Source: Phallusia mammillata
Lineage: Eukaryota
DNA length: 64,000 nucleotides
Direction: 5' to 3'
Assembly (NCBI GenBank): GCA_965637545.1
Contig: OZ281496.1
Location: 25,668,001-25,732,000, forward strand
Shown here: positions 18,593-64,000 of the stretch, piece after piece
Layout of the letters: each line of letters opens with the position of its first letter
Numbering within the stretch: the stretch's first letter is position 1
Translations under genes and position numbers: made by a program
The notes under the pieces: generated by a model
The model's database searches: none
The model's input: the letters and a program-made list of their open reading frames with translations, nothing else
Told to the model about the DNA's origin: nothing

Positions 18593-21500
18593 ATGCTGCT
18601 TTCGGTATACACCGTAGTTCTAGGTCTGGCAACTTACAGCAACGGTAAGAAGAATGTTTTTGACAATGAAAGTTTTCTGCGTTGGGTTTATCATCTTTCT
18701 GTTTGTTAATCTATTGTATTTCTTAACGGCATACGGCTGGCATACAGTAACGTGCAACAGCATTAAATCATTTTTCTCTCGCAATACGTAACGTATTTTA
18801 GTTGCAAATCTTTAATAGATAGACAAAATAAACTTCAAAACTATTTTGCGGTCAAGTGGTAAGTCGGTTTCGTGTTGAATAGATATCAACTAAATTTGAC
18901 TGTTGTGGCATGAATTTTTTGTGCACTTTGGGGAGCTTTAACAAAATTGTCCTATAGCATTCAGATGTATGACATGCCATGGGTCCAACTTTGAAGAATG
19001 CGATGTCAATGGAAGAATGACTGAGTGCATGAACAACCAGGTATATCGTTTGGTATTTCCTTTTTACAAGGACCCAACCACGCGTGATGTTAAGAATGTA
19101 GTTCTGTAAGTTTGAGTTAGCTAGTAACAAAAACAACTTGTTCAGTTATTTTAAAGTGTGAGACGTTAATATATGTCCCAAGTGATTGGAGCAGAAGAAA
19201 CGGCAAATATTACGGCATTATTCTTTACAGAATATGTGCGAAACGGTTGTAAGACGTTACGAAAACAAACTTCGAGTCATCAAGGGATGCAAAAACAAGA
19301 TGGCGTGCGAAATAAATCAAGGCCAGGTAGGCTAATTCACTCTACAATACCACAGCTAACACTTGCTAATGCATTTTGCTGCTAGAACGTATTCAACTCT
19401 GGCAAATCAACCCAATGCAACTCGGATCAAAGAAACTCAGTGTGCACTTGCTGCTGTAGTGGTGAGCTTTGCAATGTCGGCCATCCTACCTGTGTAACCT
19501 ACTACCAACCACCACCAGGTAAACTTCACTTGAGCACTGTGTTGGTACTTTTTAGATTTGTTGTCTTTCAGAAGGTCGTTATACTACAACAGTGTTTGTA
19601 ATTCAAATTTAACAAAAACCGAGTCTGCCTAACGTTACAATAACGTGCTTGCATGAGATACATCTGAAAGTAAAACAAAAAAAAGATGTTGCCAAACGTC
19701 TTTCGATCTGGAAAACTTGTAAAATGTAAAACCCTGAAAACCTTTATTACAAAACTTGTATTTTGATAGCAAATGACTGTCCCTCCGTGCCAGCCACACT
19801 ACCTCATGGTGAGATCGTTTGTTTAAATGGGAACAAGCCTGGATCGTTGTGCGAATATCGCTGCACGTCTCAGGACTATGATGTATGGCCTCTACATCGT
19901 GAGCACAACATTTGTACAAACAATGGAACCTGGGCCCATGAACTTCCATGTTGTGCAAGTAAGTGTCTTCTACTGCGTTTTAGACTAAAAGATAAAAATT
20001 CAATTGCCGTCTTTAGTTGTTTACACCTTGAGCACCATCCTTTCTGCATAACACGGGTGGTTAGCTTCTATAGTGCCCTCAACCATCAAGGTTTACTTCA
20101 GTCGGGTGTTTACTACGAGTGTGCCAACCAATTTTCTTGTGAGCTACCTCCACATAACGTTTCATAATACAGTGTAACTGTCATAATCTCCAAAAGTGTT
20201 CTCCAATATTTTGTGTAAATATCTGGTCCATACGTAATCAATAATCATAAAGACTGGTAAGTTTGAAACTTTTCGATACTTTTATAGCTTTGTAAAGATC
20301 ATAAGGTACATTTACTTTTTGCAGGACCATGTCCCCCCTTCTACCTTTACGACGATTTATGGTTGATTCATTATTCCGGACAGGATGCCGAATTGCTGCT
20401 TAAGCACACGATCGATCTGGTTAAAGCGTAAGTAGTATGTATGCAAGCTCCGAGGGACAAAGACGCAACAAATATTTCTTAGGCTTATGTTCCACAAAAC
20501 ACATAGCATGTTTTAAAATAAATTGGGTCAAATGATTCTAGAAGTTAAGTATTGTTTTTCACAGCGGGCGGTATGCTGATGACGCGATGATGGCAGCTGT
20601 AATGTACTTCAGTGGAAAACCAATCGAGTCAAGCATTATCAATTTCAACGATTACAATGGCAGTGAAACTCGGCTTTTTGAGTTAATCGAAGAAAGACTA
20701 AAGATAACCAACGAAGGTATTGTGACAAACTTTACATATCTTGCCTGTATCAGCACATAAACTGCAAGTCATTTTAAATACAAACTGTCTATAGTATATT
20801 GGATGATCACGAGTCTGCAGAGACTCATGAAGGATGGATACAAAAGTGGCGTATATTAACAGATTAAATACTTTGATCAGTCTGAAGTCACTGTAAATGG
20901 GTTGAAAAGTTATTTATTGATCTCTGAAATCTAAAATATTTTGAAACGTTTTTAGATTGGGACTGGAACTGTTTTTGTCTGGAAAATTTATCTTTTTTAA
21001 ATGTGGTAGTATTCACTTCTTAACATTTCACAATCTTGCAGGACCGGTTAACACTGGAGCAGCGATCAAATACGCTCTGGATAATATGTTGACTCCGGGG
21101 GCAGGGCTAAGAGACAGTCGTGTACCGAAAGGAATTAGTCTTCTTACGAACACCAACTCAGATGACGAGGTTAAAGAAATATCAGATGAAGTGAGACGGC
21201 GTGGATTTTGGGTAAGTAACAAATTGCTAAAATACAGGATTTGTTACAGTTGTATTTTGCTAACGATCAAATGGAACTTTTTGACAAGTCGTCAAACATA
21301 GTTGTCATGGTTCAATGCAAAAACACTAACAACCATGGTGAATGTATGCATAGAGTAAGCATTCCTTACTTAAAAAGAATTTTTCAAGTTCAAGTTGTAC
21401 CTATAACGCATATCAAATCTGAAACGTATGTGCTAATATATTGGATATCAGCTACATCACGCAATAACCCCTCCCAGTTTTTGTGAAACAATATGACTTC

Positions 21501-21780
21501 ATTGATACAACAAACTTAATAGATTATGCATACAAGTACTAACTCTTCTGTTAATTCCGGACAACGTCGCATCTTCTATGTTTTGCAGTTAGAAATTTAC
21601 GGATGGGAACTACATGGTTTTAAATTCGACCGAAAACAACTTCTCGAAATAGCTGGGGCTGAAGAGAATCTCTACATTTACGACAAACACCCGGGAGATT
21701 TTACCCACCACGATTTAAACACCCTTACCAGCACCTTTTGTTCAAACCCTTGTGACCACGTTTTGCATGATCATCCTTAA
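18593..21780 (+). CDS. Secreted LU(three-finger)-like + CCP + VWA protein, gene A (389 aa)
   Basis: Exons 18593-18644, 18958-19040, 19231-19326, 19386-19518, 19770-19958, 20325-20427, 20565-20716, 21042-21211, 21589-21780. All introns GT-AG (phases 1,0,0,1,1,2,1,0); 1170 nt open frame. Signal peptide MLLSVYTVVLGLATYSNA; ends FCSNPCDHVLHDHP. Confidence 0.85.
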
Positions 21781-22512: not shown

Positions 22513-24809
22513 ATGCTGTTTCATTGGTTGCAGCTTCTGGTGCTGGTTAGTTACCTGTCGAGCAGTAAAGGTAAGTTACATAAAACTATAGGATATAAGA
22601 CATTTCAAGAATATTCATTTGCGATAAAATACAAACAGTTTTGCCTGTTAAACATTTAGCTTTGGAATGTATGACGTGCGAATGGTCAAAAAGTATTGAT
22701 GAATGTGATGCATCGGGATACCTGTCAGTATGCCGGTCAAATCAGGTAAAATTGCACGTATAAGCCACGGCTACAACATACATATTCCACGTAATGATGA
22801 CAAAAGTGTTTTTTTTTCTGACGAAGAAATCATGTGCAACGACAGTCAGAAGATACAAAGACAGTGTCCTTGTTAGAAAAAACTGCAAAAATCGAGAATC
22901 TTGCAGGAGTAACCAGTTGCAGGTAGCGTAAGGATTGCTCGTACACAATTATTTATACATGATGGTGGCAACGTTTTTTTATTATTATTAGAACTCCAGA
23001 CACTCGGGAAGGTCAACTCAATGCAACTCCGACCAGCCAAACTCAGTTTGTACTTGTTGCTGTAACGGTGACAAATGTAACGTTGGGGGTCTTACATGCA
23101 CAAGAAACTTTCGGGGAATAGAATATGCAGGTTATGTAAATTAATTTACTTTAGGACAGTGATACTGCAGAAACCAGACGCACAGTGTTTTTGCTAACTA
23201 TAATTTTGATGTCCGGTTGTTTCGAGTACCCGTTTCACGCCTTCGTTATTAACGTATCAAGGCATTGGATTTAACCTACTCTATCTACCTTGCAGGCCCA
23301 TGCCCACCTTACCAACTTGTTGATGTTGCAATGGTTATTCATTATTCCGGCGAAAACGCACAAAGACAACTTAAGGCTGCACTGGATTCTGTGTTACACT
23401 TGTAAGTACGTAGCTGTGTGTAGTACGTTTCGGAGAAATTTGTCACAAGAGAACGATAAAATTAAAAGCTCTAAATCGGGCTTGATTAACTGAACTCAAA
23501 CTTTATCAAAGTGGTATCGTGGCGGAAGATGCAGTCAAGTATTCGCTGTTGTACTACAGTGAGGATCCGATCGAATCCAGTCTTATTAAATTCAACGAGT
23601 ACGGAGAAAATAAGACTCGTTTGCTCCAACTAGTGTCTGAACGGGTCAAGATTTCAAACACAGGTCAGTTAAATTCAAAAATTGCAGGCTTTGTCAAAAA
23701 ATATTGTTTATAGAGGGAGGGTCGCAGTGAATGACTGTTAAGGTGACTGTTCACAACTTTCTGCGTAGCAATATATAGCTAGGATGAACCTAAATCCATA
23801 TCTGGGAGCAGCCCTGAAGCGTCCGATTGGCTGATTCGGTATACGTAGACCTGACGTACTGTGACTTACTCTATAGGGGGCATTTAACGATGTTTTGATA
23901 AGCAACCTGTTCAAGTCGCAAGATAAATGGACAATCTGCAATTTTGCACAAACATATAACTTGCTTGGTTGGAAAAAGTACAACTAACCATATTGTTAAC
24001 ACTGTACAACAGGGGACGTAAACACTGGAAAGGCAATAGTTTATGCATTGGAAAACATGCTGACCCCCGAATTCGGTATGAGGGACAACAGAGTGGGAAA
24101 AAGCCTAAGTATATATCTAAACACAAATCCTGATGACGAAGTTAAAGGCCCAGCAGATGAAGCAAGAAAGAAAGGGTTTCAGGTGTGATATAAGTTCGTA
24201 CAATCATGGTCTTAACATCACGACTTAGCTAATTGGGTTCATGGAAGCCCGTTGTAAGCTTAAAATCCCATTTATGTACATAACAGCGCACCTAAGTCAG
24301 GCACGTTTTTATTCTTTTTTTTGCGCTGAAAATGAAAGAGTAAAACACAACGAGTTCAAGAACTTCATTACGGAAATTCGGTCTGCATTGGTCCAGAAAA
24401 TGTAGCAAGAACACAATGATTTTGGATGCAAGTTTTGACAACAAAGCCTAACCAAATTTGTTTCTATTTTCCTTGGCAAAAGCGCCGCCCATTTTACTCT
24501 TTTGTTTCAATGGAATATGGCAACGCGTAAAACAGTATGTTTCCGCCGTATTGCATTTGTCGAAAGAGAGTTTTCCGATTATATTTTGTCGATTCATATT
24601 ATAATGTTTGTCTTTAGGTGTACGTTTTTGGTTTTGAGAACGAAGGATTTAAGTTCGATCGCCGGAAGTTGCTCGACATAGCAGGGGAAGAGAGCCACAT
24701 ATTTACCTACGAAAAGGATTTCTCTAAAATCGATAATGATAAAAGACAACACCTGAAAGACCAGATTTGCTCGAACCCTTGTGATCACGTTTTACACGAC
24801 CATAAATAA
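22513..24809 (+). CDS. LU-like + VWA protein, gene B (332 aa), CCP exon deleted in frame
   Basis: Exons 22513-22570, 22660-22745, 22827-22922, 22992-23130, 23296-23401, 23512-23663, 24013-24182, 24618-24809; 999 nt open. Only a CCP remnant (gatgtccggttgtttcga, 23208-23225) without its acceptor remains. Confidence 0.8.
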
Positions 24810-25077
24810 AAACTTGGCGTTTTACAGCATTTTACACAAGAACAAATCAGTGGACTTTTTTCGCAAAAAATAAATATTTCTAATTTTATTACAAGCAGCT
24901 ACGGTCTTTTGTGGTGCCAAATTACATAAAATAAGTCTTTACGTAGCAGACAAGCCCCGATCAGATTAAGGCCCCCCGCAAAAATGTTGTTAGCCTGTGG
25001 GCGTTTAAACATGAAGAATTAAACAGCACACTTAAACTAGGCCTCTTCGCCTTTAAGACTGGATACAAACGAATGCT

Positions 25078-27806
25078 ATGCAGTTTAGTTGGATAAGTGT
25101 TGCTGCCCTGGTTATCTGCATATCAAATATCAGTGGTAAGTTGAAGATAATTTATTTGTAAAAGTAAATGAAATTTAAAAATAGTTAACTTGCATTTGCT
25201 GCTGTTAGCTTTGCAGTGTATGACGTGCGGGTGGTCGCAAAGTATTGATGAATGCGATGCATCAGGACATCTAAAAGAATGTATGTCAAACCAGGTACAT
25301 TTTCCCGTCAACCACGTTTTTGCAATGCATATTCTATGTGTGATCACTTTTTGTGGTATCTTATTGAAAAGGATTCATGCGAAACAACAGTAAGAAGAAA
25401 CGGAGATAATGTTCTCGTTAGTAAAGCCTGTAAAGACCGAATAGCCTGCAGAAGCAACCAACTACAGGTAACTTAGAAGCTATCAAACATTAACCACTTT
25501 GTGAATTTAACCCTTTATGTGCATTTTTGCTTTAGAACGCCAGATACGCAGGAATGTCAACTCAATGCAACTCAGATCAGCCCAATTCAGTCTGTACTTG
25601 CTGCTGTAATAAGGATATGTGTAATGTAGGAACTCTTTCTTGTGTTGGAAAAAACCAAGTAGCCGAATACGCAGGTTAAACATTCATTGCCTAATTAATG
25701 TATGTTATGCAATAGTGGTCAGTTCCGCTTATGTATATTTTTTACTTAGCACAAGATTGTCCGGTTGTTTCGACCAGTTTGCCTCACGGCAAAATAGATT
25801 GCAACAAAGATAACAGATCCGGGTCTGTATGTGAATATCAATGCACAGGGAAGGATTACTCGTTGTGGCCAAAGGAACGTGAAAACAACATTTGTTTAGG
25901 CAATGGATCGTGGGCTCACAAAAAACCTTGTTGTGCACGTTAGTTTCCAGACATTGTAACAGTGCTTTATACGTAAAAAATCAATAATATTTGTTTGTTT
26001 AATACATTTAAACGTCTGTTGCTCGGTTTATTACAGGCCCGTGTCCACCTTACTACCTTGTTGATATTGCGATGCTTATTCATTTTACTGGAGAAAATGC
26101 AGAACATCTCCTTAAGACCACACTGGAAGACACAGCAACCTTGTTAGTACAACGGTCAAAATCTGGACCATACACTCGTTTAGGGAACTAAGGAATAATA
26201 GGCGATACACTTCGCAGACAGTTTGGTAACATTTGTTTTTTTCCAGCGCCGTGATAGCCGAAGACGGAGTCAAAATCTCAACTTTGTATCACAACGAGAA
26301 CCCTGTCGAATCGAGTCTCATAAAGTTCAATGAATACGGCGAAAATGCAACACTTCTACTAGAACTTATGCTCGAACGGATCAAGATATCCAATAAAGGT
26401 GGGTAGAAGACAGTTTCACCTAAAACAAGCGATTTGAGAACGCTTCGGAAACCGGCTTGATTTGGTATGATTAATAAATGAATATGCCATGATCGCTGGT
26501 CTGCATGATCGCTTTAGGGCTGATTTCAGTATGAATGTATAGCTTACACTAGTGGCTACTGTGTTTATTGAGTTGTCAAATAAATATCGGAATAGGTTTT
26601 AAATTCTTTACATTCAACGGTGGTGTCGAAGGTGGAAATAAGATCCAATCAAAATTCTTAAAGTCTATTGCTGTGACGCCAAATCGGTTGGTTTGAAACA
26701 ACAACCTTCGACGAACAACAATATTGTTATCAAAATAATCTTAACAACAATTCAGCCTCATTCAATATGAGTGACTTACTTAATCAAATAACTGATGACA
26801 CCTCCAAAATTGTAAGCATTTTTGTGTGTCCTTTCTTCCGGCACTTGAAACTCTCTTTGGTTTCTTTTCCTGTCGAACCCCACCCTCCTTCCCTAACACG
26901 GGTGGTTGGTTTATAGGCCCCCCTCGACTGGTCCCACCAACGTTACACAGCTCCCCCCGGCTTGGTGATTGTTCTAGTGCTATTGTGTCGCTGTTCACCA
27001 AGCGAAATAAACTCATCTCATCCCAACAACAGGACCGGTCAACACTGGGAAGGCAATGCGGTATGCCTTAGACAACATGCTCATCCCCGAAGCGGGAATG
27101 AGGGACAGCAGAGTCGAAGGAGGTTTGGACATTTACATAAACACAAATCCCGATGACGACGTCAAAGGCCCAGCAGATGAGGCAAGAAGGAGGGGCATCC
27201 AGGTGTGATATCTATATACAGTTACATTTATGTGTAAACTGTCTCCAAACTTGTACAGAAAACAACTGATTGGTTCAAGTAGACCCCTGTTGCTTTCTGT
27301 GTAACAGATTCTCTTATTTATGTCAATATGTGCAAAGCAATAGGAACGTTGTAACATTAGTTAAAAGGTTTGATGATAATACGTGCCGTTAGTTCAATTT
27401 TACCAGAGGTTTTCAACTGGTGGCAAATTTACAGTTTGAAAAATGATTGGTTTGGCGCGATTAGCGAGTTATGGAAATTATCATCTTTCAAAAGCTGCAA
27501 AACGGTAATGTATAGAAAAAAAGTTCTGACAGAAACAGCAAGACGTTTTGATCTACCTTTTTTGTTTGCATTGCTAACGGATCTGAAAAAAAACTTATCT
27601 AACCATTTTTTTAGGTGTACGTGTTCGGTTTTGAGATAGGCGATTTTAAATTCGACCGTAAGAAGTTGCTCGATATAGCTGGGAAAGAGGAACATATCTT
27701 CGTTTTCGACACGGATCTTATAAACCTCAGTGAACAAGACATAGAAGAGCTGAGCGGACATTTTTGTCAAAACCCTTGTGATCACGTGTTGCATGATCAT
27801 GAATAA
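25078..27806 (+). CDS. LU-like + CCP + VWA protein, gene C (395 aa)
   Basis: Exons 25078-25135, 25209-25294, 25372-25467, 25536-25674, 25750-25938, 26037-26142, 26247-26398, 27033-27202, 27615-27806; 1188 nt open. Confidence 0.85.
26750..27024. mobile_element. 275-bp insertion with 7-bp TSD (AACAACA) at the exon-8 acceptor of gene C
   Basis: AACAACA at 26743-26749 and 27025-27031. Paralogs D and F have the empty site ttaacaacag|GACCGG. The internal motif taacacgggtggtt also occurs near 20048 in gene A intron 5. Confidence 0.65.
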
Positions 27807-28488: not shown

Positions 28489-28510
28489 TGACGTCACGTG
28501 CTGTATAAAA
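28489..28510 (+). promoter_or_regulatory. CRE (TGACGTCA) / E-box (CACGTG) / TATA cluster upstream of gene D
   Basis: tgacgtcacgtgctgtataaaa about 80-100 bp before the ATG at 28588. Gene E has taacgtcacatgttgtataaaag at 33148-33170. Confidence 0.5.
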
Positions 28511-28587
28511 CACTCCGTTGCACCATATGCGTGGCAGAAAATGCTTGTCATCATTAAGGTAATATTAGCTCTTCCTGGCCAGCGGCT

Positions 28588-31500
28588 ATGCAGATTGTTT
28601 GGCAATTTCTCGTGTTGTTGATAACCTACCTGTCCTTTGTTCAAGGTAAGCAGTCTAAATTTTCACATTTAAATTCAGTAAGATCCAAAATGTTTAACAT
28701 TTAAGTATTTTGTCAGCTTTAAAGTGTATGACATGCGAGTGGTCGCGAAGTTTAGATGAGTGCGATGCGTCGGGTACTCTGTCAGAATGCATGCCAAATC
28801 AGGTAAGATTGCACGTTTGGTTGTTCTATTCATTTACAAATGCTGATTATGTCCATGGAGAATGATAAAATCATGTTTTATACAAAAGGAATCATCGTTC
28901 GTGTTTATGAAATTTTCCCGTCTGTTATGTTTATGAGATATATATTTTATGTGTGACTTTTGTTATATTTTATGACAAAGAGATCATGTGAAACAACAGT
29001 AAGAAGAAACGGAGATGATGTTTTTGTCAGTAAAAACTGCAAAGACCGAATAGCCTGCAGAAGCAACCAACTACAGGTAACTATAGGAAGCTATCAATTT
29101 AAAAAACATTAAAAACACCTTAACCCTATGTGAAATTTTACCCTTTTCGTAAACGTTTGCTTTAGAACTCCAGATACGCAGGAAGATCAACTCAATGCAA
29201 CTCAGATCAGCCCAATTCAGTCTGTACTTGCTGCTGTAATAAGGATATGTGTAATGTAGGAACTCTTTCTTGTGTTGGAAAATACCAAGTAGCCGAATAT
29301 GCAGGTTTAACGTACTTTGCTTAATTAATGTATGTTATGCAATAGTGGTCAGTTTCGCTCATGTATCTTTTTAACTTAGAACAAGATTGTCCGGTGGTTT
29401 CGACCAGTTTGCCTCACGGCAAAATAGATTGCAACAAAGATAACAGATCCGGGTCCGTATGTCAATATCAATGCACAGGGAAGGATTACTCGCTGTGGCC
29501 AAAGCAACGTGAAAACAACATTTGTTTAGGTAATGGATCGTGGGCTCACAAAAAGCCTTGTTGTGCACGTAAGTTTTCAGACGTTTTACGGAAAAATACA
29601 GCTTGTTTTTTAATACTTTTCAACCCTATGTTGCCCGTTTTATCGCAGGCCCATGTCCACCTTACTATCTTGTTGATATTGCGATGGTTATTCATTTTAC
29701 TGGAGAAAATGCAGAGCACCTCCTAAAGACTACACTGGAAGACGCAACAACCTTGTTAGTTCTAAACCGTCAAAATCCGCACCCAATACTTTTTGTTTAG
29801 GGAACTAAGGAATAAAAGGTGATATACTTTGCAGAAAGTTTGGTATTATTTGATTTTTTTTCAGCGCTGTCACAGCTAAAGACGCAGTCAAAACCTCAGC
29901 TATGTACTACAACGAGAACCCTGTCGAATCCAGTCTTGTCAAATTCAATGAATACGGCGAAAATGCAACACTTTTACTGGAACTTATGCTTCAACGGATC
30001 AATATATCTAATAAAGGTGGGATGAGGACAATTTTAATTTGGTTTAACGTCCTCAATAGGCCTGGCGTACTATGATTTATAGATAAAAATGACGTGATAG
30101 CTAGTCTGCAAGGAGGATTCAGTGCTGATTTCGGTATCAATGTATAGCTTACACTTGTGGCAACTCTGCTTATTGAGTTGTTAACTAGCTGTCGGAATAA
30201 GCTTCAAATTCTTTACAATTTGCCGGTTGTGTGGAGGGTGGAAATAGAGTCCAATAAAAGTCTTTAAGTCCCTTGGTATCTTGCCAAATCCGTGAAGACG
30301 GTTAGTAATAACAACCCTCGACGAACAACAATACTATTATGAATACAATTTTAACAACAGGACCGGTCAACACTGGAAGGGCAATGTGGTATGGCTTGGA
30401 CAACATGCTCACCCCCGAAGCAGGTATGAGAGACAGCAGGGTCGGAAAAAGCTTGGCCCTTTACATTAACACAAATCCCGATGACGACGTCAAAGGCCCA
30501 GCGGATGAGGCAAGAAGGCGGGGTTTTCAGGTGTGGTATTGTGTGACATAACGTTTGTGTGCGAACTGTCTCAATACTTGTACAGAAAAGATTTTTAACT
30601 GGAATTTACTGTTTCAATATGAAAAGTGGTTGGTTAAGCGCAATTACACTCTAAAAAAACTTCATTCATTTTTGTGAATCTTTTGAAAGATACAAGTCTT
30701 TTTCAATCTTTCACGGCGTCGTTGTGTGAAGTTTTTATTCACAGTACCAAAATTGCGAGAAAAAAGTTTTTTATTGGGTGCGATAATCCCTTTTTTCCTA
30801 CTATGAATTTGCGCGCCAATCGTAGAGAAATGAGAAGGCGCTCCGATTGGCCAGTTCGTTGGTGAGGTCATAATTGAATTATGGCTAACAATGCATTCCA
30901 TCCTCACGAACTCCCCTCGCTCAAAAGTTGCCCAGCATGCCTTAGTATCTGGCAGCCATTATATCGCGAAAAGTGCGCGAATATGCTGCTAAACGGTTTT
31001 CGGAATTGAAATAGGCTATTGCTGCCAGGCATAAAGTTTAACCGAGTATTGCTCCTCCAGCAGTTTTATTGTAAAAAAACGTCGATTATTTGTAGTCGGT
31101 AACATGAGAATGGTTACATCTAAGTGGATGCGATATAAAGATAATGAAAGAAAAGGAAATTTGCTCACTGGATATCAAGGGATTGTTATTCAAACGAAAA
31201 GAGCCCAATTGACATGGCAATTGAAGAAGAGATGAAAAGTAAGATACTTTTTATTTTGTTTAGGTTTTGGCACTGGTGTTCTGTGTTTATTGATAATAAA
31301 TGTCTAACATTATTTCTACCTGTTTTAAACGTTGATTTAGCAATGATGGAAAAGGGTTATGAAAACATCTACAAAATAAGCACTGCGATAAACTTTAGCA
31401 TAAAATGTTGATTTGTACATTGTTATAACAATATGTGTTGTGGGTTTGTGACAGACTATTGTTTGAAATAAGGGAGCATTTAGCACTAACCAACTGCTAA

Positions 31501-32454
31501 TATTTTGCTTTTACAGAGAATCTATCAGCATTATACCTGTTCAAATGCCATCCCTAAACATGAAACGACAAGATGATACTTTTCTGCGATTTGTTTTGGT
31601 ATCGTTGGGTCAAAGGTTTAACCTGACGAGTTCTTTCTTAATTTGGAATCGCCAGTGACATTTGGCCAGAAGGGTCAGACTTGTTGTGTGCATTTGAAAA
31701 AATGTTTGCTTCCTTTTGAAGTGCACCTGTTTCAAGTTTTATCTCAATGTGCTGTGATCACTGCCTCTCTGATGTGTCAGTGTACACGTGGTGTGATTTA
31801 TGCATTTCGTTTCACAATAAAAAGACACCACTGAAGATTTCAGTATTTAAAAGATTTTTCATGTGAGGTTTCAACTATTCTAATCATTCAAAAATCTCAA
31901 TTAAACAAATCATTCAAAAAAAGATTAAAAACTGCCGAATTCAATCTTTCCATTCATTTGAAAAAATGAATCAAGTGAATTACTCAAATCGGTTCAATCT
32001 TTGAAAGGTTGGCAGGAAATTTCATTCAAACTTCATTCATTTTTTTTTAGAGTGTAGCGAGTTATGTAAAATATCATCTTTATAATGCTGCGAAACGGTA
32101 AACTATAGCATAAAATTACAACCATAGAGTCGATAAATGATAAGCTACAAGCTTATAGCAAAAAAAGTTATGACAGTAACAGCAAGACGTTTTGATTTCC
32201 CTTTAATTTGCATTGCTAACGTATCTGAAATAATCCTTTTCCACCGTTTTGTTTTTCTTAAGGTGTACGTGTTCGGTTTTGAGATGGGTGACTTTAAATT
32301 CGACCGTGAGAAGTTGCTCGATATAGCTGGGGAAGAGAGTCATATCTTCGTTTACGACACAGATTTTTTTAACATCAGTGAAGGAGACATAGAAGAGCTA
32401 AACAGACATTTTTGTCAAAACCCTTGTGATCATGTGTTGCATGATCATGAATAA
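28588..32454 (+). CDS. LU-like + CCP + VWA protein, gene D (395 aa), chimera of E-type 5' and C-type 3' parts
   Basis: Exons 28588-28645, 28717-28802, 28981-29076, 29166-29304, 29380-29568, 29649-29754, 29865-30016, 30361-30530, 32263-32454; 1188 nt open. Confidence 0.85.
30647..32054. mobile_element. 1408-bp non-autonomous DNA transposon (CACT-ended, CMC/EnSpm-like) in gene D intron 8
   Basis: TIR CACTCTAAAAAAA...TTTTTTTAGAGTG, TA duplicated at 30645-46 and 32055-56, subterminal TTCATTCA repeats. Empty site in gene C (gcgattagcgagttatg, ~27467). No transposase ORF seen. Superfamily is an inference. Confidence 0.8.
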
Positions 32455-45600: not shown

Positions 45601-45750
45601 TTCAAGTTTGATCGAAAGCAGTTGGTTAGAATAATTGGTAACAGCGAACACTTGTTCATACACCAGGGTTTCAACTACGATTTCACAGACGAAGAAATAA
45701 CGAAGATTCTGGATCATTTCTGCCGACCGTTGTGCGACCAAGTCTTGTGA
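42693..45750 (+). pseudogene. LU-like + CCP + VWA gene H, nonsense pseudogene
   Basis: Exons 42693-42759, 42828-42910, 43032-43127, 43190-43328, 43391-43579, 43979-44081, 44394-44542, 44826-44998, 45571-45750. TGA at 43226-28 (TCA in F) and TAA at 43498-500 (Tyr in paralogs). Tail CDQVL* lacks the His motif. Confidence 0.85.
45335..45382 (+). ncRNA. Degenerate type I hammerhead ribozyme in gene H intron 8, probably retroelement-derived
   Basis: ctgca-CGGATGA-gacct/ata/aggtt-GAAA-cagt/gtgc/attgt-C-ggcag: stem II of 5 bp, stem III of 5 bp, GUC cleavage triplet, stem I of 4 bp. Deviations are U4>G, G10.1-U11.1 and an N1.1 mismatch. Confidence 0.6.
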
Positions 45751-50284: not shown

Positions 50285-52808
50285 ATGAAAGCAGTGGTAT
50301 TTTGCCTTGTGGTAGCGACATACGTTCTTTGCACCGAATGTAAGACGTTGTTATATGTTATGGAAGTGTTAGAGATGAAACAGAATATGGATGCTTTACA
50401 GGTCTCAGATGCATTACATGCTATGGATCAGGAAGTGTTGATGATTGCGACGTAAATGGAAAACTCAGGCAATGTATGCCTAACGAGGTGTGCAATAAAA
50501 CTGTTTAGTGTAAAACGTTTGTCTACTACCACAAAACGATTTGAGACATTTGTTTAGCTATCATGTGAAACAACTGTGAGACGTTCAGGCGGTCATGTAA
50601 CTGTCATGAAAGGATGCAAGAACTCACGAGCATGCAGGGACAACCAAATGCAGGTAGAACGATACTGTATACTTCTGTGATGAAAAGTAATGGCAACTAA
50701 AAGTTTTGCAGGTCAATGTGTGAATAACATGGATTTCGTTTTTTCACCCAGCTGTCTAAAGAGTCCATGTAAATCGACTAAATATATGAAAATATTTATT
50801 CTTGCAGAATACAAAATTCTCCGGAAGGTCAACTCAGTGCAATTCAAATCAATTAAACTCAGTTTGTACTTGTTGTTGTGACAAAGAAATGTGCAACATT
50901 GGAATTTCAAACTGCAATCTTAACTACCCACAAATCGGTTTTGATGGTGTGTTAGTTTGTTTTTTCCTCGTATAGAACAAATGGATAATATTTGTGTTTG
51001 CTACAGCAAAGGACTGTCCTGTGGCTTCAACATACTTTCCACATGGCAACGTAAAGTGCAACAACGAGAACAACGCTTGTGAATATCAATGCACAGAAAA
51101 TGACTTCTTTGTGTGGCCAGTAGGAAGCGAAATTAATGTTTGTCTCAGCAATGGATCATGGGCTCACGAAAAACCATGCTGCGCACGTAAGTACATGGTA
51201 CACAAAAAACACAAACTTTAGACTAAATGTTTCAAATACAAGAGAACCGTTTTGTTACAACAGACATACAGAATTCTTACTACCAACAAAGCCGCTGGTA
51301 GTTTTTTAATTTTGCTAGCTGTTTGTGAAACGAGCATAAGCCGTAAAAGCGTCACTTAGATACTTGGCAGTTGGGCAATAGCTACAACTAACATAAATTG
51401 TAACCTTTAGGTAAGTGCATTTTTTGCAGGTCCTTGTCCTCCATACAGAATTGCAGACAGCACAATGATTGTTCATCACACTGGGGAAAGTGGAAAACGC
51501 TTAATGGAACAGCTGCCTAGCGCTATAACATAGTTAAGTACACATGTTGAAGCTCTGTGTCTCAAAGATACCGTTTTTTATATTTTGTTCTTAGTGCGCC
51601 TATAGCAGAAGACCTTGTCAAGTTGTCCGTGATATCCTTTGGTGATGAAGTGGTTGAATCGAGTCTCGTGAAGTTTAATGAATATGGGGCGAACGAGACA
51701 CTATTGATAAAACTGTTGCAGGAAAGACAAGTAATTACCGATGAAGGTGAGTTGCTTTACATTTCGTGTTTGTTAAACCAGGATTTAAATTTACATGAGC
51801 GTTACATAATTATGCTTTCGGGAAATTTAATAGTAAGCAAAGTTAACCTAATATATGATTGCTTTACAGCATGCTGTTGCAACCAAAAACTTGTGTCGTG
51901 ATTGGTTTTCAGTTTAATCTATTAAGCATAGTGTATCTAATTACGATCTTTAGGTCCAGGTGATACAGGACTCGCCATGCAATACGCCCTGGATAATATG
52001 TTGATCCCCGAGGCTGGCATGAGAACCAATCCCATAGTAATGAAAACTTTGGAACTTCACACTAACACGCAACCGAACGACAACGCGATAGAAGTTGCAA
52101 AGACAGCAAGAGAAAGTGGCTTCTTGGTGAGAATCCTTTATAGTAGCGTATAGCAGTAGTTCTCAAACGGTGCGTCGCGGCGCCCTGCTGCGTCGTTTCA
52201 ATTTTCCAAGGGCGTCGCAGAATAGTTCCTTTTCGTGGCTTTTTGTTGTTGTATCAGTAAACACAACTTTAATAATACGTTTCCTCATTAACTTTTATTT
52301 GCTGGTGCGTTACAAGTCCAGAAAACTTTTCCAGAGGCGTCGCAATAAAAACAGTTTGAGAACCACTGGCGTATAGTATTACCTAAAAAATTCTAGGCAC
52401 TCTAAAAAATGTTAAATTCGCATTTTTTACCATTTTTGCACAACAACCGTTCCATGAAAATATAATATTTGACTTGCAACAAGATGTTTGTGAATAAACT
52501 GTCCGTATATGACTTCGGTAAACCAGCAGTTCCTACACTTGTTGGGTCCAAATGTTAGTGATTAGATCTAAAACATAGCCTGTCGTGTTTTATACATTAA
52601 TTTAATCTCTTTATTTTAGGTCTATGTTTTCGGATTTGAAATTGGCGGTTTTAAATTTGACCGCGACCAGCTCGAAAAGATTACCGGAGACAAGGAGCAC
52701 GTATTCTTATTTCAGGGTGATTACGGAGATTTAACGCCGCAAAACAAAAAAGACTTGAATGATCATTTTTGTCCCCATCCGTGTGATCACAGTTTGCATA
52801 ATGAGTAA
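50285..52808 (+). CDS. LU-like + CCP + VWA protein, gene J (390 aa)
   Basis: Exons 50285-50339, 50402-50487, 50558-50653, 50808-50946, 51007-51186, 51430-51532, 51595-51746, 51954-52126, 52620-52808; 1173 nt open. TATA-like ctataaat near 50245. Confidence 0.85.
52154..52368. mobile_element. 215-bp hAT-type MITE in gene J intron 8
   Basis: TIRs cagtagttctcaaac / gtttgagaaccactg; perfect 8-bp TSD GCGTATAG at 52146-53 and 52369-76. Confidence 0.9.
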
Positions 52809-53372: not shown

Positions 53373-55978
53373 ATGAAAGCAGTACTCCTTTGTATTCTGA
53401 CAGCCGCGTACATTATTAGAAGTGATGGTAAGAATTTTTTGATTAAATATCGTTATAGAGTGCTATTGTATAAAACTTACAAACTGTTTAGGTCTCAGAT
53501 GCGTAACATGTTACAGTTCAAAAAGCATCGATGATTGCGACGCAAGCGGAAAACTCAAGCAATGTATGTCCAACGAGGTGCGTTGTAAAAGGGTAAAGTA
53601 AGCCGTTGTACTGCTGTAACCGGGCTTTAAGCACTAAAAGTTTTGTGTTGTTTGACGCCATACCAACTCCCGCAATCAATCTTTATGTAAAATAATGTTG
53701 AAGTCACTAACTCATACATGCTCCACGAAGCCAAACGGTATATGCTTCGCTGTGAGAGTATATGTTTGTAAACAAATATTATTGGAATTTTTATTGTTCA
53801 GAACTCATGTGAAACAACCGTGAGGCGTTCACGCAATCACATAACGGTCATGAAAGGATGTAAAGCATCACCATCATGCAGAGACAACCAAATGCAAGTA
53901 AGGTGTAGGAAAGTAAAATGAACATTCGAGTTTTTTGTCTGATTGGAACAAGATAAGTTTTTCCATCTTTGTTTTACAGTATTATGTAAATTGTGCCGTT
54001 ATAGTAATATTTATGGCTGCATGAAATTATTTTGTGGTGCAGAACACTAGATATTCGGGAGGGTCCACACAGTGCAACTCAGATCAAGACAATTCAGTTT
54101 GTACTTGCTGCTGTAACAAAGACATGTGCAATATTGGAATTCCTAACTGCAATTCCAATTACCCACAAGCCCAAAATGATGGTAGGTTTTCTTCGCTTTT
54201 CTCTATTAATACCTAAACGGCCCAAAACGAATCTTTTTATAATTATAATGACCTACAGCAATAGACTGCCCCGCAATGTCAACCAAGTTTCCGCATGGCA
54301 ACGTAAAGCGTCATAACGACAAAGTTTATGAATTTCAATGCACGGAAAAAGACTACTTCGTATGGCCAGAGGGAAACGACATAAACATATGTCTTGGAAA
54401 TGGATCGTGGGCTCACGAAAAACCCTGTTGCGCACGTAAGTTTATTTCAAAACGCAATTGTAACTTACCGCCGAATAATAACATGAAAGAAAACCCTACA
54501 TTAAACAACAAATAACTCGGCAATAAAAAGTATCCTAAAAAGGCGACAATCACTTGCAAAAAAGGTGCTATGTTCCCTTCGTATGTCGTTTGAAGGCTCA
54601 TGTTTTTTTAAGCAAAGCTTGGCGAGACAGAACTAAAACGGTGCACAAACATATATGTTTTACAGGCAACTGTCCTCCATACAGAATTGCGGATCAGACA
54701 ATGCTCGTTCATCATACTGGAGAAAGTGGGAAACGTTTAATGCAACAGCTTCCCACTTCAATTGTATAGTTGAGTACAAACGGACAAACTGCGTTCAAAC
54801 CTACGTGGTTATGAACAAAATTATTAAAAATGTTGTCTTTACAGCGCTCCGATTGGAGAAGACGCTCTGAAATTATCAGTGATGTCTTACGGTGACGACA
54901 TTGTTGAATCAAGCGTTGTGAAGTTTAACGAATATGGAGAGAACGCAACACGATTATCTGAATTACTACGGGAAAGACAAGTCATTTCTGAAGAGGGTGA
55001 GTTGCACTTGTTTTCTTTTTTAACTTTTTACTGAAAGTCAAGCAGATAAAAGCAATTCGATAATTGTTTGAATTTTGTCCAACATACCTTGAGTCGTAGT
55101 AGAAGCTCAGTGATGTGAATTTCGCTGAGGAAAATTACACAATTTCACAAGTGTGAAATAGGTATGCCATGCTTATCAGAAGAAGGTGAAAAGGATCCAA
55201 TAGGTGCACACATGAGAAGTGGACCTTTTCCTTTGGTTAATAACTGCTACAATGTAATTGTTCTTATGTGCTAATAACTTGGTTTTAGTCAATGTTCATG
55301 TACAGAAATAGTTAATGACGCTTTCCGTTTGTTTCCTTACATCACAAACCAAATCAAAACTTTTCTTCTCGTCTAGGTCCGGGAGACACAGGGCGTGCGA
55401 TGCAATATGCACTGGACAATCTGATAACACTAGAATCTGGCATGAGACCCAATAAGATAGTACTAAAATCATTGGGACTTCACACCAACACGCAGCCCAA
55501 CAGCAATGCCATAGAAGCAGGAAAAAGAGCAAGAGAACGTGGAATTCTGGTATGAAGCAATACAAATAGTTGTTTTTGTAACTTTTAATAAAACGCATGT
55601 ACGTATGTTTACTAAAAAGAAACTTACATGTACTAACTTTGGAAGTCACATAACAGCCTCAACATTTGAGAGCAACTGTTTCCAAACAGTTTCGTAAATA
55701 AGTCAAGTTACAAGCAACTGATTTTGAAAAGCTCGTTTCAATTACATTGTTGGTCGTATTTTTATATTGAGTGTATGTTTTTGTTTCAGGTCTATGTATT
55801 TGGGTTCGAAATTGGCGGGTTCAAATTTGACCGAGAACGACTGGCTGAGATTACTGGAACCAAAGACCACTTGTTTATATTCCAGGGTTATTACGGTGAT
55901 TTAACGCCAGAGAATATCGAAGACCACAACTCACATTTTTGTCCACATCCGTGTGACCACAGTTTACATGATGAATAA
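53373..55978 (+). CDS. LU-like + CCP + VWA protein, gene K (389 aa)
   Basis: Exons 53373-53427, 53492-53577, 53802-53897, 54043-54181, 54259-54435, 54666-54768, 54845-54996, 55377-55549, 55790-55978; 1170 nt open. The CCP has lost two Cys. Confidence 0.85.
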
Positions 55979-57109: not shown

Positions 57110-60100
57110 ATGAAGATTGTAGCATTTTGTTTTGTAGTGGGTTCGTTCATCGCATGCACGAAAGGTAAGAAGTTATGAGGTACTCAAAAGAATAATGACA
57201 ATCCAAATGCATTGTGTTTAGGTTTAAAATGTATGACCTGCTACACTACTGGTAGTTTTGAAGACTGCGATGTAAATGGAAAACTGAAGCAATGTATGCC
57301 AAACCAGGTTAGTGACACTGAAAACAGTTAAAACACGAAACGAATAAAAGGACGTCTGAACATAGTTCGTTATTCCATTCGTTTAGGACTCATGTGAAAC
57401 AGTCGTGAGACGCTCAGGAAGTCATATGACTGTCATGAAGGGCTGCAAGAATTCACGAGCATGTGAAAACAACCAAATGCAGGTACAAAATATATGACAC
57501 AAACTTATCTATTCCAAAGTACGTAAGTACCCGAATAAGGTATTATTTTTGGCTTAGAACAGAAAATACTCGGGAAGATCAACTCAGTGCAACGCGGATC
57601 AAATTAATTCAGTTTGTACCTGTTGCTGTAACGACGACCTTTGCAACGGTGGAGCGCCCACTTGCGTGGAACATTACAAACCCACACAACCTCGTAAGAC
57701 ACATGGCAATAACGTGAGAAATATTGAACAACATATACCTAGAGGTTTTTGTTTAGTTCTAGACTGTCCTCAAGTTCGAGAGAATTTTCCCCATGGAAAA
57801 ATTGAATGTTACAACGAGAACAAAGCTGGAGCATTGTGCGAATATCAATGTACTGCAAAGGATTATGCTGTTTGGCCGCCAAAGCGAACTACAAATGTTT
57901 GCCTCGCTAATGGAACGTGGGCACACGAAGAGCCGTGCTGCGCACGTAAGTTGTGTATGCTGAAGCTTTTATCAATAAATGTGTATTCATTTGGAAAAAT
58001 AGCCGCAATAAAACTATTGCCCTACATAACCTTACTTAAAAAAATCGATGCACACGAACTAAGTAAACCATCTTCAAAACAAAATGTACTTGCCTTTTTT
58101 CCTACCATACATTTAAAAGCTTGATTCATAATCTACAAAGCATTAAGTTGTGTTGTTCATTTTCTTTTTAGGTCCATGTCCACCCTATTATCTTTTCGAT
58201 AACATTCTGATGTTTCATTTCGGGGGTGAGGACGGTACACAACAACTTGAAAACACATTGAACATGTTTAGCAGGTGAAAGTTGATGTGCAAAACACAAT
58301 ACTGTAGGATTCATAGTACAAAAACACAGAAATTTAATAACCTTTTTGAGTGTGCAATACAACAAAGTCTTAGTTGAATACAAAAATGAAAATGTGGACA
58401 GACTAACTTTAAAACATGTTTTTGTAAAGCGCACTAAAAAGTGTTTTCAAAGGATTTTTTAGCAAAACGTCGTTTCAAATTATACTCTTGCTTGACTACC
58501 GTTTTGTTCACCTGAAATACCTCTTTGGTTCATTGTTACCAAGTAAGGAATTTTGACAGTTAAAAGTATGATGTTTCATGTTTGCAGCTCACCAATAGCA
58601 GAGGACGCCCTCAAAGAAGCTGCACTCTACTTCAGTGGTGAACCGATTGAATCAAGTGTAGTTAAGTTTAACGAATATGGAGCAGATTTAACACGCATGG
58701 TTCAGTTGATAAAAGAAAGAATTAAAGCGGTGAATGAAGGTACGTCCAAGGTTCTAGTGATAACACAAATAGCACCCAAGAAAAACTTTGATACTCATTG
58801 TAATACCATACTCTGTTGAAAAGCCGCAAAGGGTAACATATAGATTTATTACTGGGATAACCGCTGCGTTGATGCAGGCCAGCGATCACGACACACTAAC
58901 ATAATACGTCAGCTCTACTGAAGGCGATATACAGGGTGAATCAATATTCCGAACATTCCCAAATGGCAATTAGACATATAGGCTATAAACATCCAGTCTG
59001 TGTCGGCATTCGGAAAAGCACATGGTTTGACGTTAGAATGCACGAAAAGTATACCATAAAACAATTTGCAGAATCGGTTTTAACCAACGGACACAGACAA
59101 ATGACTGACACGACTGAACGCTAGTTATAATACGTTTAATTTTGTTACAGGAGGCCCGGATGTGGGCGCTGCCATTCAATACGCTATGGACAATCTGTTT
59201 ATCCCTGAAGCTGGTGCAAGAGACGATCGTGTACCAAAGAGTATCACAATTTTGACCAATCGAAATCCAGACGACGACGCAACTGAAGTAGCAGAAGAAG
59301 CAAGAAGACGTGGCATATTGGTAACAACCGCTCTGCCGTTTTTTGGTCACACAGTCCGATGTTGATTAAGATACCAAATGTTCACATTAGACTATAAATA
59401 GCATCTAACCCAGGGGTTCCCAACCTGTGGTACGCGTACCACTAGTGGTACGCGATAGCTTTTCAGGTGGTACGCGAGTAGCTTCCGCTTTTTTCACGTA
59501 AACCTGAATTTACAACTTTATATTTTGTTTATCTGGTTTTGTTTTTCAAAAAAATCTCCAAGGTTCTTCTTATTGTTACGTAACTATTCCTGTTGTTTCG
59601 TATCATTACGATCTTCAAAATACAGGTTATGTCAATTGTCAACAAGAAGCACAGTTGCTTTGAAACGCCGTAGAATGCTGTGAGACAGTGGGCATTAATT
59701 ATATGTCAAATGATTGCCCTTGATAGATATCATCTACTATTTTATAGCTTAGGCTACAAATAGCGTTGAATAATGCTAGTGTTGTAAGCTAAAATAGATC
59801 AGGATAAAATGTTCAATAACGGTTACGTATGAAGAGGTAGTTTATGCTTCGTAGTAATGCATAGGAATGTGAGCAGGTATTTTCCGTCACGATGATCATC
59901 AAGTCAAAAATTTGAAACCGACTATAGGTGCGCACGGAAATGAATTTTGATGCGCTGCCAGTTTACACCGCGCATCGACCAATTGGTGGACAGTAAACAA
60001 AAATATCATTAAATTTCGTTGTGGTGCTTTAGTGTTATTTTAGTAGGCCAATATTCTTCTTCTGAATACAATATGATTCGATCAAATTAGTTGTTCTGCA

Positions 60101-60593
60101 AGAAGTGGTACGCGTGGCAGTACAGAGCGTCCAAGTGGTACGAGATCGTAAAAAGGTTGGGAACCCCTGATCTAACCACTACACCGAAGCATTTTGTGCA
60201 GTGAATGTAAGATTTCAAAACCCTCTGCAAAAGGTGGATTTCAAACCGAAAACAAGAGCCTATTTTAGGCAGGTGTTTTACTGCAACAACGGATGTTTTG
60301 TAAACTAATTGGGACAATAAAAATGCAACACAACAATATCTAACGATATACCTTGTCCTTGGAGAAAGCTAAAAGTCCTTCATGTTTGTTACCTTTTTCA
60401 GATTTACTTTCTTGGAACTGAAGTAGACAACTACAAATTCGACCGTGAGAAGATACTAGACATAACTGGAGAAAAAGAGCACATTTATATATTCGGGCAG
60501 TCGTTCAACACTCTCACTGCTGACCTTCTAACAGATATGACCAATCACTTCTGCCAAAACCCATGTGACCACGTCCTGCACGATCACAATTAA
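57110..60593 (+). CDS. LU-like + CCP + VWA protein, gene L (392 aa)
   Basis: Exons 57110-57164, 57222-57307, 57387-57482, 57558-57693, 57757-57945, 58172-58274, 58588-58739, 59151-59320, 60402-60593; 1179 nt open. Confidence 0.85.
59411..60169. mobile_element. 759-bp non-autonomous hAT element in gene L intron 8
   Basis: 16-bp perfect TIRs caggggttcccaacct / aggttgggaacccctg; 8-bp TSD ATCTAACC at 59403-10 and 60170-77; subterminal gtggtacgcg repeats. Absent from paralog M. Confidence 0.9.
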
Positions 60594-61397: not shown

Positions 61398-64000
61398 ATG
61401 AAGATTGTATCATTTTGTATCATTGTAGCTTCGTTCATCGTCTGCATAAAAGGTAAAGCACCTGTTTACTATTCGGTAAGATATGCCAAATAAGATGTGT
61501 GATGTTTAGGTTTGAAATGTATGAACTGCTACAGTTCTGGTAGCTTTGAAGACTGCGATGTAAATGGAAAACTAAATCAATGTATGCCAAACCAGGTTAG
61601 TGAAACAGCAGACGATTTTTAAATCAAACATTAAACAAATGTTTAAATTAATATAGATTAATATTCCATTCGTTTAGGGCTCATGTGAAACAGTCGTGAG
61701 ACGCTCAGGAAGTCAAATGACTGTCATGAAAGGCTGCAAGAACTCACGAGCATGCAGGGACAACCAAATGCAGGTAAGGTATTATGTGTCACACACTTAT
61801 CTATTCCAAAAAACTTTCCATAGTAGTCATTAATGATATTATTTTCTATTCAGAACACAAGATACTCAGGTAGATCAACTCAGTGCAATGCGGATCAAAT
61901 TAATTCAGTTTGTACGTGTTGTTGCAACAAAGACATGTGCAACGCTGGAGCGCCCACTTGTGTGGAATATTACAGACCTGCACAACCTCGTAAGCCACAT
62001 GCCAGTCACGTAAGTAATATGGAACAACATATACCTTAATGTTTTTGTTTAGTTCAAGACTGTCCTCAAGTCCCTCAAAATTTTCCCCATGGCAACATTG
62101 AATGCCATAATGAGAACAGAGGTGGAGCAGTGTGCGAATATCAATGTACTGCAAAAGACTACGGTGTTTGGCCTCCAAAGCGAACTACAAACGTTTGCCT
62201 TGCGAATGGAACGTGGGCACACGAAGAGCCCTGCTGCACACGTAAGTTGTGTATGCTGAAGCTTTTAGAAGTAAATGTGCTTTTAATCGGAATGAATAGC
62301 TGCAATAAAACTATTGCGTTACACAACGTTACTTCAAAAAAGCAGATGCACTTCAGTAAAATATCCTCAAAGCAAATTCTACTTGACAACTTGTCTCTCA
62401 CAAACATTTGGAAAAAGGTTTCTTAATCTAAAAAGTGTTTAGTTGTGTTGTGCATTTTCTTGTCAGGACCGTGTCCTCCCTATTTTCTTTTCGATGCCAT
62501 TATGATGTTTCATTTCGGGGGTCCTAACGGCGAACAACAACTAGAAAACACGCTGCAGGTGTTTGGCGGGTAAGAGTTAACTTGCAAGACATGCAGATTA
62601 CAAGTGTTGTTACTTTTAGAGTTTGCGTTGCTACAAATTTTCAGTTGAAAAAACAGAAACCGATTTTTGCAAAATGAAAACGGTAGTACTGATTATTAGA
62701 GAATAAGTTTCTTCACATCACACTAACATCGGAAAAGTTGTTTCAAAAGACTTGAAATTAAAAACTTTAAAGTAAAAATTTAACAATTGTTGCCTGACTA
62801 GCGTTTTATTCTCTTATGTTGAAAGTATGGTGTTTAATGTTAGCAACAAACCAATACCTGATAGTTTATAGTTTGCAGTGTACCATTAGCAGAGGACGCC
62901 TTTAAAGAAGCTGCATTCTACTTCAGTGGCGAACCGATTGAATCGAGTGTAATGAAGTTTAACGAGTACGGAGCAAATGCAACACGCATGGTTCAATTAC
63001 TGAAAGAAAGAATTAGGGTGGTGAATGAAGGTACGACTAGCGTTCTGGTTATAAGGTGACAAATAGCACCAAAAAAATCGAATGCTTATTGTAACTGTTG
63101 GTGGCATATTGTCAGTTGATAACATCCTTTATTTAAAAGGCAGCGAAGGTTCACATATAGATTTATTACTGGCATTAGTACCAATGCGCTCATGCAAACC
63201 AGCTGTAAAGATACACCATTTTAATCACAGTAGGCCTGGTCTTTTGAAAGCGTCATACAGCTTAAAACCGGTCTGTTCAGCACCCTAAAACAACTAGACA
63301 TAGGAAACATCAAGCATGCATGGTAAAATTATCATAGTTTGACGTTAGAATGCAGGACAAATACACCATAAAACACTTTACAGGATCGGTTTTAACTAAT
63401 GGACACAGACAAATGACTGTTGAGCTCAAACGTAAGTTACAAATAAATAATTTCATTAAATTGTTTGTTGCAGGTGGCATGAATGTGGGAGCAGCCATTC
63501 AGTACGCTATGGACAATCTGTTTATTCCTGAGGCAGGTGCAAGAGACGATCGTGTACCGAAGAGTATCTCGATTATTACCAATCGGAATCCAGACGACAA
63601 CGCAAAGGAAATAGCAGAAGAAGCAAGAAGACGTGGCATTTTGGTGAAATGTTAACCGTTTAGTAAATATGGTTGTTATTGTCACCCAATGTTCACATTA
63701 GACTATAAACAAAGCTAGAAAACAAAACTTTCCACAAAGGTGGGTTAAAACATAATACAAGAGCCTATTCGAGGCTGGTGTTTACTACAAAGCAAGATGT
63801 TTTGTAGACTAAATGTGGGTACAATAAAAATGCCACATAGCAGCATGTAACCACCTTGCCCTTGACACAAGCTCGGATTTAACTGATAAAAACACAAAAA
63901 ATTTGGTAAAATTGCTTACCTGAGCGTTTGAGAAACGTGCAAGTAAGATAGAGAAATCTAAAATTCCGTTATGTTTGTTAAATTGTTTCAGATTTACTTT
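61398..64000 (+). CDS. LU-like + CCP + VWA protein, gene M (3' end beyond the window)
   Basis: Exons 61398-61452, 61510-61595, 61678-61773, 61854-61989, 62053-62241, 62467-62569, 62879-63030, 63474-63643; exon 9 starts at 63992. Closest to gene L. Confidence 0.85.

Follow-up and report, generated by a model that had tools for sequence, protein, structure and literature searches.

The window analysed here, a stretch of 64,000 nucleotides of the ascidian Phallusia mammillata (C3:25668001-25732000 in a 240-Mb assembly), carries from position 18593 to its end a tandem array of 13 colinear paralogous genes, all on the + strand, and on balance we consider it probable that they encode a lineage-expanded ascidian family of secreted adaptors that dock on extracellular matrix. 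Each gene specifies a protein of ~390 amino acids (aa), predicted to be secreted, with a signal peptide, a three-finger (LU) domain of 14 cysteines, one sushi (CCP) domain and a von Willebrand factor A (VWA) domain; cysteine pairs flank the VWA at both ends and the C-terminus is conserved and His-rich. The array arose as genes of a type confined to ascidians, as far as sequence comparison reaches, duplicated locally in a birth-and-death process. The original prediction, made from the letters of the window, had described a tandem array of at least 13 LU-CCP-VWA paralogs; the array was confirmed, and the 13 are the window's share of a series of ~19-20 units that continues beyond the window end.

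The window is AT-rich (~38% GC) and gap-free. Self-comparison separates two tandem systems within it: a 2.4-3 kb repeat occupies 1-18500, and the remainder, from 18600, is made of units 2.5-4.5 kb long. A C-T-C-C-C motif occurs 13 times, on the + strand only and each time within a longer conserved block (positions 19443, 23049, 25593, 29223, 33750, 36966, 39689, 43247, 47505, 50865, 54100, 57615 and 61911). We modelled copy 3 by eye as a reference and located the corresponding exons of the other units from homology, phase conservation and the closest splice site, first exons being picked by hydrophobicity and a phase-1 donor. The copy 3 peptides match colinear exons 2-9 in every unit with the exception of unit 2, where exon 5 has no match, and a hydrophobic N-terminal exon with a phase-1 donor (mostly GTAAG) is present in every unit. 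All modelled introns are GT-AG and their phases are conserved (after exons 1 to 8: 1, 0, 0, 1, 1, 2, 1, 0), which bears out the proposal that the LU block (exons 2-4) and the CCP exon (exon 5) are phase 1-1 modules. Open reading frames (ORFs) are intact in 11 of the 13 copies, namely ten nine-exon genes (389-395 aa) and copy 2 (332 aa). The shared nine-exon plan was thus right for most copies, the departures being copy 2, with eight exons and no CCP, and copy 8, a probable pseudogene with two in-frame stops. Copy 2 preserves its frame without the sushi exon because exon 5 is a 1-1 exon. No copy has a second hydrophobic segment and all proteins end in a hydrophilic, His-rich tail; they therefore have neither a transmembrane segment nor a glycosylphosphatidylinositol (GPI) signal, as had been proposed. 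The proteins finish in a motif, C-D-H-x-x-H-D/E-(H), which is encoded by the end of exon 9 and kept from Phallusia to Ciona. The copies are as follows, in window coordinates.

Copy 1, 18593..21780, + strand: nine exons (18593-18644, 18958-19040, 19231-19326, 19386-19518, 19770-19958, 20325-20427, 20565-20716, 21042-21211, 21589-21780), all introns GT-AG, intact 389-aa ORF (signal peptide-LU-CCP-VWA)
Copy 2, 22513..24809, + strand: eight exons, intact 332-aa ORF, no CCP exon, exon 4 joined straight to exon 6
Copy 3 (reference model), 25078..27806, + strand: nine exons (25078-25135, 25209-25294, 25372-25467, 25536-25674, 25750-25938, 26037-26142, 26247-26398, 27033-27202, 27615-27806), intact 395-aa ORF
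Copy 4, 28588..32454, + strand: nine exons, intact 395-aa ORF, long intron 8 (1.7 kb)
Copy 5, 33252..35353, + strand: nine exons, intact 395-aa ORF
Copy 6, 36421..38820, + strand: nine exons, intact 395-aa ORF, mosaic
Copy 7, 39180..41835, + strand: nine exons, intact 391-aa ORF
Copy 8, 42714..45750, + strand: in-frame TGA at 43226-43228 (exon 4) and TAA at 43498-43500 (exon 5), probable pseudogene
Copy 9, 46691..49476, + strand: nine exons, intact 389-aa ORF
Copy 10, 50285..52808, + strand: nine exons, intact 390-aa ORF
Copy 11, 53373..55978, + strand: nine exons, intact 389-aa ORF, CCP minus one extra cysteine pair
Copy 12, 57110..60593, + strand: nine exons, intact 392-aa ORF
Copy 13, 61398..64000, + strand: exons 1-8 intact, exon 9 spanning the window end (63992-64177)

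The gene models are backed by transcripts. This sequence is present in 14 public sequencing runs from four studies, 12 of which contain 10-39% of the sampled words, a share that fits spliced RNA because exons make up ~41% of the query stretch. Contigs of four runs (three studies) were compared with 22450-27900, which covers copies 2 and 3; as assemblies, they attest that a sequence or junction is present and say nothing of expression levels. Fourteen of the 15 predicted junctions of the two copies are seen in spliced RNA contigs as GT..AG joints, so that transcripts using the predicted splice sites do exist. Copy 3 is covered completely, in all eight introns, and copy 2 in six of seven (22570/22660, 22922/22992, 23130/23296, 23401/23512, 23663/24013 and 24182/24618), the direct joint of exon 4 to exon 6 included; the one junction missing from the list is exon 2-exon 3 of copy 2. 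The RNA also set the exon 6 donor of copy 3 at 26142 and not 26154, reducing the by-eye ORF from 399 aa to 395 aa. Contigs cross the stop codons of both copies unspliced into the 3' untranslated region, and therefore no downstream exon adds a protease or a transmembrane segment, in keeping with the protease-free architecture first put forward.

These contigs also point to variation between individuals. The copy 2 intron at 23131-23295, between exons 4 and 6, corresponds to a direct exon 4-exon 6 joint in runs X1 and X2; a contig of run X6 has a CCP exon joined to copy 2 exons 6-9 with 0 mismatches, and that CCP exon is at most ~84% identical to any exon 5 of the array. The CCP exon of copy 2 is probably a presence/absence allele. 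Allelic differences in copy 3 are few, with four nonsynonymous and five synonymous. Within copy 3 intron 7, RNA contigs lie over ~180 bases (26818-27000) and their loose ends run into unrelated sequence; this element is probably repeated or mobile and transcribed elsewhere.

For the domains, database and fold work started from single window exons or from database homologues whose alignments were supplemented with window exons, and the joined nine-exon window proteins were used for frame checks, alignment, substitution rates and the tree. For the LU domain, Pfam models (UPAR_LY6, CD59, Toxin_TOLIP) gave no match to single exons or to full-length ascidian homologues (E <= 0.1), the three LU exons being individually too short for an informative Pfam test. 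Because Pfam makes no call, the LU was assessed by two profile searches and a fold model. An L-x-C-x-x-C start and a C-C-x(4)-C-N end are invariant in all 12 intact sets of exons 2-4 and in the ascidian homologues, and the total of 14 cysteines is two pairs beyond the core framework (8-10 core cysteines). An exon 4 profile from 12 copies, searched exhaustively against 1.84 billion proteins, matched 14 proteins; nine of the ten whose source was looked up are ascidian and one is from a sea cucumber, and the other four are short matches (89-125 aa). In the sea-cucumber protein (P0004) the four stretches matched by the profile are Pfam CD59/Toxin_TOLIP domains. A profile of the whole LU (homologues and window exons, in register) found LYPD1 in the PDB (6zss, E 1.2e-5, positions 3-92), followed by LYPD6B and LYPD6, with the cysteines aligned. 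The AlphaFold2 model of a Ciona homologue's LU, with window exons in the alignment, reached pLDDT 89.4, and its top 50 Foldseek matches are all three-finger proteins, e.g., Lynx1 at TMt 0.79.

The 14-cysteine LU assignment stands, as judged from framework, profile match and predicted fold; its nearest relatives are the Lynx/LYPD proteins, and not CD59, the example given when the domain was first described. LYPD1 (Lynx2), Lynx1 and LYPD6/6B have the three-finger fold, the start and the end motif in common with the window LU, and LYPD1 likewise has an extra cysteine before the CC pair. However, these are single-domain proteins, GPI-anchored or small and secreted, whereas the window LU is fused to a CCP and a VWA, has 14 cysteines and lacks a GPI signal.

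The CCP domain assigned to exon 5 was upheld by Pfam, copy 3 exon 5 scoring 21.4 bits against PF00084 (cut-off 20.7) and the sushi of homologues up to 28.6 bits. Its framework of four cysteines and a tryptophan is conserved, with one extra cysteine pair. In copy 11 (exon 5, 54259-54435) two sushi cysteines present in most copies are replaced together by Arg and Tyr, a change that fits pairwise loss of one extra disulfide.

The VWA domain is likewise secure, with copy 3 exon 8 alone at 24.5 bits against PF00092 (cut-off 23.8), full-length homologues at 45-74 bits and an AlphaFold2 model of pLDDT 89.3. Against the PDB its profile matched 58 sequences at E <= 0.001, including collagen VI alpha3, mussel PTMP1, integrin I domains and vWF A3. 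Fold neighbours are collagen VI alpha3 N2/N5 (E ~1e-12 to 1e-13), vWF A3, PTMP1 and collagen-binding integrin I domains; the best matches by profile and fold together (TM ~0.8) are vWF A3, the collagen VI alpha3 N-terminal VWAs and PTMP1 of mussel byssus. The VWA of factor B/C2 is absent from the 58 PDB profile matches and from the top 50 fold matches.

What sets the window VWA apart is its metal-ion-dependent adhesion site (MIDAS). Where the canonical site reads D-x-S-x-S ... T ... D, all 13 copies have H-x-(S/T/G/I)-x-(E/Q/K/P) ... T/V ... N; the first position is H, the third E/Q/K/P and the last D has become N in 13 of 13, with the T kept in 11. The first-position His, at the start of exon 6, is invariant in Phallusia and Ciona, with three residues deleted just after it. 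The last Asp, Asn in the window copies, is kept in Ciona, and the whole site (D-x-S-x-S, T, D) is intact in multi-CCP relatives from Styela and Clavelina. The domain is of the collagen VI/vWF-A3 type and has lost its MIDAS. Factor B uses its MIDAS to hold C3b, and this metal-dependent capture is therefore unavailable to proteins that have lost the site. As vWF A3 binds collagen without using its metal site, the closest analogue may be a metal-independent matrix-binding face of that kind. It is conceivable that the invariant His and the His-rich C-terminus form an alternative metal site or a pH-sensitive one.

Relatives with the same architecture were found in Ciona: LOC100175287, LOC100175501/'matrilin-2' (XP_009862474) and 'MUP-4-like' (XP_002125201) in C. 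intestinalis, and H2YH32, H2ZPS8 and H2YTD1 in C. savignyi. These LU-CCP-VWA proteins are colinear over their full length at 36-41% identity (LOC100175287 at 36-37%), and share the domain order, the extra cysteines, the first-MIDAS His and the His-rich C-terminus. Their exon plan is the same as that of the window copies where traced, which is everywhere but exons 2-3 of LOC100175501. More distant are Styela clava 'P-selectin-like' (XP_039252832) and Clavelina lepadiformis 'E-selectin-like', which have the same LU head (C-x-C-C-C ... C-N), CCPs and a C-terminal VWA with the same flanking cysteines; they differ in carrying 5-8 CCPs and an intact MIDAS, compared with one CCP in the window proteins, and form the outgroup in the tree. 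A Phallusia member is present as a cDNA-derived database entry (P0002). A word-index protein search gave two matches with a homologue as query and four with the family alignment, the index being too coarse for this family.

The names these proteins bear in databases (matrilin-2, MUP-4-like, P/E-selectin-like or uncharacterised) are all automatic. Matrilins consist of EGF modules and a coiled coil in addition, selectins have a C-type lectin domain, EGF and a transmembrane segment, and MUP-4 has EGF repeats and a transmembrane segment. We rejected the matrilin, selectin and MUP-4 names, since Pfam finds only VWA and Sushi in the one-CCP homologues and the window proteins have no transmembrane segment. 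A study of the family was not found in the open literature, where a Ciona member appears only as a table entry in one paper (PMC8495957) and a proteome paper names sushi and VWFA proteins in general. The original view that this architecture is not a characterised family holds.

Turning to the origin of the array, the next 30 kb of the chromosome holds six further units and a partial one, to window coordinate ~89965. Genome-wide there are at least 85 matches to exon 4 and at least 107 to exon 5, mostly on C3 and in several clusters. A maximum-likelihood tree groups the 13 copies in a single clade (100/100) that excludes the Ciona and Phallusia relatives in the comparison, and physical neighbours are also nearest relatives; a Phallusia family member outside the clade has its best genomic match 3.4 Mb away, at 81-97% per exon. 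The three members looked up in Ciona intestinalis are single genes of the same exon plan on three chromosomes with unrelated neighbours, in contrast to the Phallusia arrays of up to ~20 units. As the Ciona members are dispersed singletons, the arrays are therefore an expansion of the Phallusia lineage by tandem duplication. On C7 (11239975-11293815) ~10 matches to exon 4 recur every ~6 kb, each in an open frame of 44 aa and all scoring almost alike; they may belong to a young tandem array of their own, with a different architecture.

The original prediction of a rapidly diversifying family did not survive analysis of substitution rates. The pairwise ratio of nonsynonymous to synonymous divergence (dN/dS, Nei-Gojobori) is 0.1-0.3 in LU, CCP and VWA, youngest pairs included, and gene-wide positive selection was rejected on these values. 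Most paralogs are old. The youngest pairs are copies 3/4 (dS 0.15-0.35) and 12/13 (dS 0.3-0.55); synonymous sites have reached saturation in most of the others, and median paralog identity is 56% for LU, 58% for CCP and 49% for VWA. Copy 6 is of mosaic origin: from the signal peptide through the LU exons it is near copy 8 (42714-43330; LU dN 0.08), and in its CCP-VWA exons near copies 3-5 (CCP dS 0.055 from copy 3). Exon blocks have therefore been exchanged between units, which indicates unequal crossing-over or gene conversion. These genes evolve by birth and death under purifying selection and show no rapid diversification at the level of the whole gene.

We reasoned that the VWA of these secreted mosaics would attach to fibrillar matrix (collagen, or the tunic or epidermal matrix) independently of metal, in the manner of vWF A3, and that the three-finger head with its sushi spacer would then be displayed to a second binding partner. 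Such matrix-docking adaptors would be distinct from the known proteins they resemble, as vWF A3, collagen VI and PTMP1 are large multidomain matrix proteins with neither LU nor CCP, and matrix binding of the ascidian VWA is only predicted. Embryonic or larval epidermis, with matrix remodelling around metamorphosis, is a tentative suggestion for the setting. It draws on Ciona KH.C4.73 (= LOC100175287), whose expression falls to 0.27 from onset to mid tail regression and which is up-regulated under caspase inhibition (PMC8495957). Several points weigh against the adaptor interpretation. Docking is argued from VWA fold and sequence similarity, and VWAs bind many things; the three domains vary about equally between paralogs, so that no constant anchor with a variable head is evident. 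Large tandem families of secreted proteins are a common feature of immune and recognition genes as well. For Ciona, the link to expression is firm for one gene only, through its LOC number, the 'matrilin-2' and 'MUP-4-like' of PMC8495957 matching by name only.

The alternative that comes nearest is a role in innate immunity, which we consider unlikely. On this account the proteins would be recognition molecules or complement-regulating decoys whose modules bind C3-type or pore-forming components or microbes, expansion having diversified their specificities. LU, CCP and VWA domains of the CD59, factor H/DAF and factor B types all occur in complement proteins, and the family is secreted, large, tandem and lineage-specific, with relatives in Styela and Clavelina that combine 5-8 CCPs with an intact MIDAS. 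However, MIDAS loss in every copy, the missing factor B/C2 VWAs among profile and fold matches, and an LU nearest Lynx/LYPD weaken the complement analogy first drawn for these genes; dN/dS gives no arms-race sign at gene level, and the sole expression datum for a homologue is developmental. As for complement itself, factor B and C2 share the order of CCP then VWA with the window proteins; in contrast to these, they possess a serine protease, a working MIDAS and three CCPs, and the searches did not detect their VWA as a relative. Membership of factor B/C2 was rejected, as the window proteins have one CCP or none, have lost the MIDAS and end at a stop in exon 9 with no protease; we conclude that they are not convertase-like complement components. 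The broader proposal of secreted binders or decoys in immunity, allorecognition or gamete recognition was right in describing secreted mosaics without a protease, but nothing was found that points to those roles.

A further possibility arises from the genes directly upstream, the tandem array at 1992-18047, which consists of six single-exon multi-pass ORFs on the + strand (267-320 aa, 4-7 hydrophobic segments). One of them (17085-18047) is expressed, since a protein derived from Phallusia mammillata cDNA matches it at 99.7% identity. Their two nearest paralogs (C3:27135959-27136840 and C3:27142278-27143147, - strand, 58-59% identity) lie 1.4 Mb away, interleaved on the same strand with the LU-CCP-VWA genes of a cluster at C3:27.13-27.15 Mb. 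The multi-pass ORFs have no Pfam match and no PDB match, only weak Atlas leads to fungal DUF7703 (score 0.86, below the useful range). Some three-finger toxins bind G-protein-coupled receptors, and the window proteins might by analogy be ligands or modulators of these adjacent orphan, seven-transmembrane-like (7TM-like) proteins. Same-strand adjacency here, its recurrence in the second cluster and the cDNA speak for such a ligand half of a linked system, which we nevertheless hold to be quite improbable, given that the two loci may stem from one duplicated block and so are not independent, that a look within 10 kb of three Ciona family genes found no 7TM homologue, that elsewhere most members of the two families show no obvious pairing, and that the membrane proteins match no known receptor family. 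The bolder version, in which both gene types form a co-duplicating ligand-receptor system, an ascidian-specific signalling or recognition code with three-finger heads addressing 7TM-like receptors, is very unlikely.

Ascidian self-sterility rests on tightly linked, polymorphic pairs of secreted and membrane genes (the Ciona Themis loci). That precedent and the likely presence/absence allele of one CCP exon notwithstanding, a part in gamete recognition or allorecognition, with many copies and alleles encoding individuality, is extremely improbable in view of the few allelic differences in copy 3, purifying selection, the solitary rather than colonial habit of Phallusia mammillata and the larval regulation that is the only one known for a homologue.

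With at least 85 copies in Phallusia, compared with the handful of Ciona singletons found, this is among the largest lineage-specific secreted families of ascidians, the closest invertebrate relatives of vertebrates. New here are the loss of the MIDAS, the likely sushi-exon presence/absence allele and the linkage of orphan multi-pass genes at two loci, and an attractive but weak complement analogy has been corrected. Should the adaptors indeed tether three-finger ligands to matrix, such ligands would be presented in a novel manner, and the family would supply candidates for the poorly understood biology of epidermis, tunic and metamorphosis in sea squirts. Experimental handles include verified gene models, a natural CCP-less isoform and the linked orphan membrane genes.

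Outside the genes, the spacers before copies 1 and 8 share an inverted match (18255-18341 and 42115-42205, 77% over 91 bases), which is probably a small dispersed repeat.

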